Part shown: positions 43,001 through 46,000 of the stretch, piece by piece
Numbering within the stretch: the first letter of the stretch is position 1
How the letters are laid out: each line of letters opens with the position of its first letter
Origin: Octopus bimaculoides
Taxonomy: Eukaryota
Length of the DNA: 64,000 bases
Assembly: GCF_001194135.2 (NCBI RefSeq)
Contig: NC_068997.1
Coordinates: forward strand, 19,151,281-19,215,280
Reading direction: 5' to 3'
Made by a program: the position numbers and the translations under genes
Notes under the pieces: model-generated
The model's input: only the letters and a program-made list of their open reading frames with translations
Databases searched by the model: none
Told to the model about the DNA's origin: nothing

Positions 43001-46000
43001 ATACAGGAACACAAGGTTGTGAAATGTAGTAAATGTTATGACACAGGATCTGGGTCATTTTTTCCTGAGCCATGAATATCTTTGCCCCTTCACTTGAATC
43101 TATTGATGATCCTCTCAACAAAGTGAATATTTTCCTTACATCAACTTATTGCTTACATGTAGACCCTGAACACTGGCTCTTCTCAGATTGTGATTTAAGA
43201 TTCTCAGTCATTGGACTCTGGTCATGCCAGGGCATTGCTTTGAAAATAATTTTTTTCTTAAATCACAATCTGAGAAGAGCCAGTGTTCAAGGTCTACATG
43301 TAAGCAATAAGTTGATGTAAGGAAAATAAGTGTGTGAATCTGATGGGGGAAAATATTGAATAAAATCTCTTGTATTTTCTTTTACCCAAAACTAAGAAAT
43401 TCCAGCACCTACTTGTAAGCACCTATACATGTATAAGCACAGGTATGGCTGTGTAGACAGAGACTGAAAGAAGCCCATCATATATATATATATATATATA
43501 TATATATATGAATTTAAAACGACCTCGAACCGATTTGATTTCCACTCATTTACTTATTAAATGAGTAGAAATCAAACCAGTGGGTGTGTTAGGTAATAAG
43601 GCATTAAAAGAGAATGACTCTCGCAAGACAATAAAATATGCTTCAACACATGAATTCACATAAAGAATCTTGCAAACCAAATAATTAATGTGTGTGTGTG
43701 TGTATATACATATATATATATTTATATGTATATGTATATATTTATGTGTGTGTTTGTCTCCTGCCATCACTTGGCAACCAATGCTGGTGTGTTTACATCC
43801 CTGTAACTTAGCAGTTTGGCAAAAAAAATGATAGAATAAGTTGAGAGATTGATTTGTTTGACTAAAAAAACCCCTTTAAGGCAGTGCTCCAACATGCTGC
43901 AGTCAAATGACTGAAATGTGTAAGAAAATAAAAGAATAAAAGAATATATTTATGACAAAACAGAATTGGTGTGTAGTGAAGGGAAATTAATTCTGCCATT
44001 CTAGACAAAACTCTTTGTTGAAGAAGAAATAAAGTAAAACATATTCCAATTTTGTGGATTTTATTGAAGCAATACTTTTTTTTTCAGGACAGCTGCTACA
44101 TATTGGATGAGATTGCAACGTGATACAACAAATTTATTTCATACACACACACACATGCACACTCTTACCCACATCCCTCTCTGTAATTTTACTATTGTTG
44201 TATTCATGTACAGTATTATATTTATTGATAACTGAATGACAACAGCTTTAACGCTTTCATGCCTAGGCATGGCTTTATGGTTAAGAAGAATGCTTCCTAA
44301 CCATATGGTCCTGGGTTCAGTCCCAACTACATAAAATCTTGAAGACTTTCCAACATATCACTGAATTGTCCAAAGCCTTGTGAGTGGATTTGGAAAACAG
44401 AAACTGTAAGAAACCCATCATATGCATCAATCAGTTTGTTTTTGAATCCACTTCTCAACCGTATTGTCTTGGATTCTGTCTCACTGCATAGCACATTGAA
44501 GACAAGTTTCTTCCACTATAACCCTGAGTTGACCAAAGTCTTATGAGTGGATTTGGCAGACAGAAACTAAAAGAAACCAATGATCTTCAACATCATCATC
44601 ATTTAAAATCTGTTTTCCATGCTGGCATGGGTTAGACGGTTTGACTGGAACTGGTGAGCCAGAGAGCTGCACCAGGTTTCAATCTGATCTGGCTTGGTTT
44701 CTACAGCTGGGTACACTTCCTAATGCCAACCACTCCAAGAGTGTAATGATGCTTTTTATGTGCCACATGCATGACACTGGCAACAGCCAGTCATATATAT
44801 ATATATATATATATATATATATATATATATATATATAGATATATATATCAGTCAGTGCTTTTGGATTCATGCTCTTATCTACTATACAGCCACACAACTT
44901 TTGGGAGTGATGCAATATAGAATCTGTATCTATATGATACATTCACTGTCTCACATATACAAATATTAACGTCTGGCTCCACTTCTAATTAATTGAGACT
45001 CTATTTAGTCATCTCGTTTAAAAAAAAAAAATTTCCTCGTTATCTTTTCTTGTTTTTGCTTTTAATCCTTTTGAAACTGTGTCCACCAATGTTTACTTCT
45101 CATGTGTACATGTATAATCTTGATTAATTAAAGCTGTTGTACATGTCACATTAAATACGTTAACGCTTCAGTATTTTGTAGTTGTTTACATTGTTGTCCA
45201 GTCAAAGAGATAGTTGTTGATCGATCTCTTTTTAGCAATAAATTCTACATAATTCCAAGAAGAAATAATAATGATAATGATAATAATAATAAAATCCTAC
45301 TGTTTTTGTGTCTACATAGCCAACTTGATGCTGTGTTAACTGCAGTGTGAGGAGGATAAATGAAATGCTTTGGAAGGAATCAATAAATATTATTGGTAGC
45401 AATATATCTTAACTCTCTCCTAAAACCCATGCATTTTAACAACAAAACAGAGGAAAATTTCTGTTTACATATTTTTGGGAAAGTTTATGTGTGTGATTAT
45501 CTGCAGATATGCAAGATAAAAAAAATGAGGGCCTATGGAGGATTAAACACATATTTTGTTAATTTGTGTGTGTGTATTTACTGCTGTGACATGTTGCTGC
45601 CTGGTCAGCAGCTTTATGCTGACCAAGCAGCAAAATCCAGATTACTCTGCCAAATGCAATGCTTATTTATTCACATTGTTTTAAATTAATCATGAATTAT
45701 CTTGTAGCTTCAAGATTTTGATATGATTGTTTTGTTTTGTTTGTTTTTTTTAGAATGATCATAGGGTTGGTGTGAGAGGCTGAGCATAAAACTCTTAGAA
45801 TATTTTGGCCAGATATGGCTGACTTAAATGCTAAACGGTTTAAGCCTTCTTCATTTTTAATCCTCCTCATGCATACTTCATAAGGCTTTTCCTTTTTGAT
45901 TATGGCCTTGATTTTATTGTGTGTGTGGGTAGGTGTGTTTGGCATTAGGAACGGTATCTAGCCATAAAAACCATTCCAAAACAGCCAACTGGAATCTAGT

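Follow-up and report, generated by a model that had tools for sequence, protein, structure and literature searches.

Miniature inverted-repeat transposable elements (MITEs) are non-coding DNA elements below about 800 bp in length that are bounded by terminal inverted repeats (TIRs) with defined ends. Multiple dispersed copies are the defining property of a transposon family. In Octopus vulgaris, the recently active TIR insertions include 1553 of the Tc1-mariner type and 871 unclassified insertions averaging 265 bp (PMC13282606). The same genome has 65 "MITE" singletons that are defined by structure only, with an average length of 196 bp (PMC13282606). The locus described here is a palindrome in an intron of the furry (fry) gene of Octopus bimaculoides. 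It is found within 64,000 nt of contig NC_068997.1 (assembly GCF_001194135.2, positions 19,151,281 to 19,215,280 of the forward strand), and this whole stretch is referred to as the window. With moderate confidence, the palindrome is interpreted as a young DNA transposon copy of the small, non-coding, fold-back (MITE-like) type. It is an ordinary kind of repeat, and the hairpin was accurately described by the initial annotation of the window.

The palindrome spans 43128-43328 (201 nt). An inverted-repeat finder identifies two arms of 73 nt each that are 99% complementary and separated by 55 nt. The left arm (43128-43200) starts with TA TTTTCCTTAC, and the right arm (43256-43328) finishes with GTAAGGAAAA TA. 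The spacer (43201-43255) is the loop of the hairpin, and small internal stems alone are predicted within it. When the arms are compared base by base, 72/73 positions pair. The sole unpaired position is C43166 versus A43290 (+ strand). In the sense RNA, this A faces the C and has A-A-G as its sequence context, and on the antisense strand the same position becomes a G-U pair. Both the arm geometry and the A-C configuration are as the initial annotation had given them. The right arm contains two 5'-splice-site-like motifs, CAT/GTAAGC and GAT/GTAAGG (43300-43304 and 43317-43321), that would be buried in the duplex in the pre-mRNA.

The folding of this hairpin far exceeds chance. The predicted fold of the sense RNA (43108-43348) is -138 kcal/mol versus -52.8 +/- 4.6 kcal/mol for shuffled sequences (z = -18.6), and 0/200 dinucleotide shuffles reach the energy of the hairpin. 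For the DNA strand of 201 nt, the predicted fold is -84.2 kcal/mol (z = -20.2). The element is AT-rich, with a GC content of 36% that is the same as that of the window. Among the inverted repeats of the whole window, all of which were surveyed, 43128-43328 alone is both near-perfect and of complex sequence. The rest consist of N-runs, microsatellites, or pairs of short interspersed nuclear elements (SINEs) in opposite orientation at 70-81%. A further hairpin-like inverted repeat at 6055-6162 / 6222-6329 has the same architecture (108-nt arms and a 59-nt spacer) and is just 71% complementary. It does not resemble the element at 43128 in sequence and could be a MITE or fold-back element that is old and decayed.

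Both ends of the element are sharp, and complementarity immediately outside the arms is 15/60, which is the chance level. A larger, older inverted repeat around the arms was considered and dismissed. The candidate pairing of 43075-43092 with 43340-43357 matches at 16/18, but 39/500 shuffles are as good and the offsets are asymmetric. The element begins with TA followed by TTTTCC and ends with GGAAAA followed by TA. The outermost two bases of each arm are thus TA, as had been pointed out previously, and these ends fit a Tc1/mariner-type TA duplication. The left and right candidate target-site duplications are located at 43121-43129 and 43327-43339, respectively. They consist either of the TA itself (43128-43129 and 43327-43328) or of a gapped direct repeat that overlaps the ends, AAGTGAAT (43121-43128) and AAGTG[TGTG]AAT (43328-43339), in which 8 nt are matched. 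Among 20,000 flank pairs taken at random from the window, 0.65% have an anchored gapped direct repeat with at least 8 matched bases, in a test framed after the repeat was seen. TA on both sides has an expected chance frequency of 0.66%, and this test too was framed after looking. An exact anchored direct repeat of at least 2 nt is found in 32% of the random flank pairs. Overall, the flanks lean toward insertion with a target-site duplication, without proving it or selecting one of the two candidates.

A MITE-like fold-back element is indicated by the combination of size, AT-richness, absence of coding capacity, terminal inverted repeats with sharp ends, and flanking repeats. At 201 bp and non-coding, it is well within the MITE size range, and its terminal inverted repeats have defined ends (72/73 inside versus 15/60 outside). 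An 82-aa open reading frame (ORF) that spans the hairpin matches no Pfam family, its exact protein is not on record, and it has no word-sharing relatives. From these searches, the element is predicted to have no coding capacity. The proposed element would have terminal inverted repeats of 73 nt and an interior of 55 nt, and within this interior lies an old SINE relic of 42 nt, which was probably carried within the element. The arms would be alike because the copy, or the event that made the copy, is recent. Nothing suggests that selection maintains the pairing of the arms.

The initial annotation preferred a template switch, or selection or gene conversion, to a MITE because young arms surround an old loop. 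This contrast does not count against a MITE. The interior of a non-autonomous element is whatever its progenitor carried, and an old fragment inside is therefore no obstacle to a MITE. If a transposon family carried such a captured fragment, each of its young copies would still be matched in its arms. Moreover, the sharp ends and flanking direct repeats fit insertion at least as well as they fit a template switch. The counts of TIR insertions in O. vulgaris also make a multi-copy family the likelier prior.

Four points weigh against a transposon. First, only one copy is present in the window, whereas a transposon family is defined by multiple dispersed copies. Neither blastn (word size 7; best other match E = 0.13) nor nhmmer (none at E <= 10) finds a second copy of the arms in the 64-kb window, in agreement with the earlier statement that they are unrepeated there. 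Second, the window contains no transposase gene or related TIR. Third, the target-site duplication is ambiguous. The TA alone is weak, the 8-nt repeat requires a 4-nt indel, and the test is post hoc. Fourth, the terminal bases (TTTTCC... or ATTTTCC...) appear unlike the canonical ends of Tc1/mariner or hAT elements.

Three other candidate similarities involving the element were rejected. A 23-nt, 87% match to an arm at 50144-50165 (E = 0.13-0.4) was dismissed because there is no inverted partner at that site. A weak nhmmer alignment (E = 0.13) of element positions 41-163 with a SINE head at 44469-44585 was dismissed as chance. The 7-mer CTTACAT is repeated within each arm and was considered as a transposase-binding repeat, but its recurrence is estimated not to exceed chance.

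Searches outside the window do not bear on the number of copies. Two arm segments, used as exact DNA patterns, have no match in metagenome contigs, prokaryotic genomes, or viral contigs, where octopod DNA is not expected. The arm and SINE sequence strings returned no papers in a full-text literature search. As a control, an ORF from the SINE, which has ~25 fragments in the window and must be present in this genome in enormous numbers, likewise gave no protein match. A 101-aa ORF from a fry exon that is highly conserved is not on record, and its nearest relative is just 82% identical. Because the SINE control was empty and the fry exon reached 82% at best, these collections gave no octopod sequence, and the external negatives are uninformative on copy number.

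The spacer contains an old SINE relic. The spacer motif TCAGTCATTKGACTNNGGNCATGC has 8 matches in the window versus 0 expected in a pattern search, and it belongs to a SINE with ~25-30 fragments in the 64-kb window. A SINE profile for nhmmer was built from ten copies in the window. With this profile, a 42-nt relic of the 3'-tail region is identified at 43204-43245 on the - strand (profile positions 42-83; 15 bits). The E-value of this match is 1.7e-6 in a local search and 2.7e-4 when the whole window is searched. The strand of the relic (reverse complement) follows our reading of the polarity of the SINE. The relic is identical to the SINE consensus at 31/42 positions (74%). The other copies range from 71 to 90%, which places the relic at the diverged end. 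The profile therefore agrees with the initial annotation that a SINE fragment forms part of the loop, and it also recovers all three of the copies that had been listed at about 705, 20645, and 37131.

The two ends of the relic differ. Its right end coincides with a boundary where several other short SINE fragments stop (8064-8122, 47189-47250, and others). At its left end, the last ~20 nt of the SINE tail are missing, as the relic starts at profile position 42 and positions 21-41 are absent. The absence of the tail end indicates that the left arm meets the spacer at a genuine breakpoint within the relic. Because this junction cuts the SINE tail, the loop is part of the rearranged unit and not an intact retroposed piece. 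Homology to the SINE that reaches into the arms was considered and dismissed, as nhmmer aligns 43204-43245 only and the adjoining arm bases match at 5/12, which is about chance.

Other copies of this SINE in the window also have unusual structures. Fragments that consist of the 3' tail only are located at 8064-8122, 47189-47250, 31927-32015, and 40721-40806, and they stop near the profile position of the relic (about 81-103). This suggests either a ~60-nt tail module common to a partner long interspersed nuclear element or another SINE, or strongly 5'-truncated copies. Downstream of the hairpin, in the copy at 43439-43943, the head GCACAGGTATGGCTGTGT is apparently fused directly to TAGACAGAGACTGAAAGAAGCCC, in a by-eye comparison with the family. 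By this by-eye reading, the copy appears to carry an internal deletion compared to other copies.

The arms and the loop differ in age. In the O. vulgaris repeat study, a Jukes-Cantor (JC) distance of 0.09 corresponds to 25 million years (My), and the youngest SINE wave is dated to 18 My (PMC13282606). If the O. vulgaris clock holds for this species, the 1/73 differences between the arms would give an age of 1.9 My (0.05-10.6 My as a Poisson range). Arms that had existed for 18 My would show ~8.7 mismatches, and the probability of one or fewer is 0.001. The relic in the spacer is 26% diverged from the SINE consensus, with a nominal JC distance of 0.32. These values uphold the initial annotation, which had set young arms against an old loop.

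The most serious competitor, which is tentative and less probable than a MITE-like element, is a one-off local inverted duplication that was never mobile. A template switch or snap-back repair synthesis at a break inside the old SINE tail would have copied ~73 nt of adjoining intron as its reverse complement. The result would be the original arm, the old spacer, and the new arm. This explanation accounts for arms that are single-copy in the window, and for a spacer of ordinary old intron repeat debris between arms that differ at 1/73. The left arm-spacer junction inside the SINE tail is what a break there predicts, and the termini appear unlike those of known transposon superfamilies. However, T43201 and T43255 at the inner junctions are unpaired, and no microhomology is visible at either junction. 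The flanking direct repeats (TA or the gapped AAGTGAAT) are not predicted by the mechanism. Template-switch events in the literature are mostly far shorter than 73 nt, which also weighs against a local duplication. Structure-defined singleton "MITEs" of about 196 bp are present in O. vulgaris, but young multi-copy TIR elements far outnumber singletons in this one surveyed octopus genome (PMC13282606). On balance, the young MITE-like copy is preferred.

The hairpin is located within fry. Translated open stretches of the window match furry/Fry fragments carrying PF14222 in a protein search. Searches with furry fragments (tblastn) place exons, in collinear order along the + strand, at about 33081, 36916, 40407-40664, 46975-47130, 47399, 48440, 49410, and 50808, and further exons at about 52122-52472, 53478, 55440, and 57356. 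The Pfam domain MOR2-PAG1_N is found in the exons at 46939-47130 and 52152-52466. The exon region upstream of the hairpin is 40407-40664 (+; E = 5e-11), and the exon downstream is 46975-47130 (+; E = 6e-20), where PF14222 (MOR2-PAG1_N) scores 48 bits (E = 1.2e-12). All exon bounds are approximate, as splice sites were not mapped. The hairpin is inside a ~6.3-kb intron, with the upstream exon about 2.5 kb away and the downstream exon about 3.6 kb away. With + strand fry exons on both sides, the hairpin is part of the sense pre-mRNA. The intronic location proposed in the initial annotation is thus confirmed, and the long duplex that it envisioned in the pre-mRNA agrees with the predicted RNA fold and the sense-strand position.

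Given its position on the transcribed strand, every fry pre-mRNA would carry a near-perfect duplex of 73 bp. The expected fate of this duplex would be non-specific binding by ADARs and A-to-I editing at multiple sites, after which it would be spliced out and degraded together with the intron. The Fry protein is not expected to be affected, and we infer that the hairpin is edited and has no function. An editome study of 22 species, including O. bimaculoides, defined intramolecular double-stranded RNA (dsRNA) as at least 50 nt with at least 80% identity, and repeats that form such duplexes are the main ADAR targets across metazoans (PMC9989829). The fry hairpin exceeds these values, with a 73-bp duplex at 99% on the sense strand of the intron. 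Promiscuous editing of the hairpin by ADARs is therefore a reasonable and ordinary expectation, and generic hyper-editing of the intronic duplex is plausible from its predicted structure.

ADARs edit an A opposite a C efficiently and favor a 3' G. The initial annotation had pointed to the A-C mismatch as the configuration that ADARs favor. The configuration and its context stand, but the mismatch as a functional signal does not. Whenever one arm acquires a single transition, one of the two transcript strands has A-C and the other has G-U, and the A-C pair in the sense RNA is therefore a coin-flip and not a signal.

Small RNAs were also proposed as products of the hairpin. In 32 surveyed molluscs, with small-RNA data for 8 species (O. 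bimaculoides among them), there were microRNAs (miRNAs) and PIWI-interacting RNAs and no evidence of an endogenous small interfering RNA (endo-siRNA) pathway (PMC12479628), which disfavors the suggestion of an endo-siRNA precursor. A miRNA-like precursor fares no better. Animal miRNA precursors have an imperfect stem of ~35 bp and a small terminal loop, whereas this hairpin has a near-perfect stem of 73 bp and a 55-nt loop, which is the wrong shape for the animal Microprocessor. Matches to plant long-hairpin MIR families in Rfam were rejected, as all are sub-threshold (e.g., MIR4208, 70 bits versus 140) and any long perfect hairpin gives such matches. Extrusion of a cruciform in duplex DNA is unlikely with a 55-nt spacer.

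These observations bear on another explanation, in which the palindrome is older and its arms are kept identical by arm-to-arm gene conversion or by selection for a function of the RNA hairpin. The function could be that of an ADAR-recruiting editing inducer for fry exons or of a small-RNA precursor. A long and very stable duplex, carried by the sense pre-mRNA of a gene with roles in neurons and morphogenesis, is compatible with such a role, as is the A in an A-A-G context opposite a C, an efficient ADAR configuration. An old spacer between matching arms is likewise expected from homogenization. Even so, this explanation is unlikely. The A-C configuration is the outcome of half of all transitions, and the closest exons are 2.5 and 3.6 kb away. 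The shape is unlike that of an animal miRNA precursor, with every Rfam match below its gathering score, and arms of 73 nt are short for efficient gene conversion. Evidence of an endo-siRNA pathway is also missing from the surveyed molluscs, O. bimaculoides among them (PMC12479628). The most specific version is very unlikely. It holds that the hairpin is single-copy and under selection, that it recruits ADAR to the fry pre-mRNA as an editing inducer for nearby exons, and that the A-C pair is its own high-efficiency site.

An assembly artefact, in which a fold-back chimera or mis-joined inverted copy is absent from the genome of the animal, is very improbable, since, although the window is scaffolded across gaps, with ten N-runs (10-930 nt each; 2725 N in total) and graph assemblers struggle with inverted repeats, the hairpin lies within one contig at 3.0-3.4 kb from the nearest gaps, distinct unique sequence flanks each side with no path returning on itself, and the arms carry a mismatch and enclose a spacer of complex sequence.

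Other features of the window were noted along with the hairpin. The window is repeat-dense, and in addition to its ~25-30 SINE fragments, TA/TG microsatellites are very frequent. At 9620-10532, open frames of up to 230 codons are present on both strands with low-complexity Pro/Thr/His/Gly runs, and these look like simple-sequence expansions rather than genes. An open stretch at 3857-4084 (+) contains ...MLFADDCAIV..., which is reminiscent of the F/YxDD motif of reverse transcriptases; it has no Pfam match at E <= 0.01 and is unconfirmed.

The importance of the hairpin is small if it arose as a young MITE copy or by local duplication. It would add to the intronic repeats that form dsRNA in a genome rich in repeats, and it might mark recent activity of DNA transposons. 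If it were a selected, ADAR-recruiting hairpin, it would be an example of an editing-inducer element in a cephalopod. It would gain importance only if RNA data tied intronic palindromes to the very heavy A-to-I editing of cephalopod neural transcripts, and nothing here points in that direction.

Among known systems, the Drosophila hairpin RNA (hpRNA) and endo-siRNA loci and the plant long-hairpin MIR genes share with the fry hairpin a long, near-perfect hairpin. The Rfam covariance models of the plant MIR genes match it structurally, all below their gathering scores. A point of difference is that the mollusc survey found no endo-siRNA pathway (PMC12479628). Inverted retroelement pairs, such as inverted Alu elements, and the mammalian intronic editing-inducer elements are alike in that they form intramolecular dsRNA of more than 50 bp within an intron of a transcribed gene. 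The inverted pairs are composed of two separate repeat copies, whereas the fry hairpin is one small palindrome.

Template-switch and fold-back inverted duplications are a further point of comparison. In these events, a new reverse-complement copy is placed next to an unchanged spacer, and they resemble the locus in having young arms, old sequence between them, and a location that is single-copy, as the hairpin is within the window. The described events usually involve tens of bases, and the arms of the fry hairpin are 73 nt. The hairpin also differs from them in its flanking direct repeats and in having no visible junction microhomology. The remaining system is the MITEs with long terminal inverted repeats, which are either Stowaway-like and derived from Tc1/mariner, with a TA duplication, or of the hAT type, with an 8-bp duplication. 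The hairpin differs from these in its ambiguous duplication and in terminal bases that appear unlike the canonical superfamily ends. Like these MITEs, it is ~200 bp, AT-rich, and non-coding. It also shares with them sharp ends, a candidate flanking repeat of TA or 8 nt, an intronic location, and a predicted long hairpin when transcribed.

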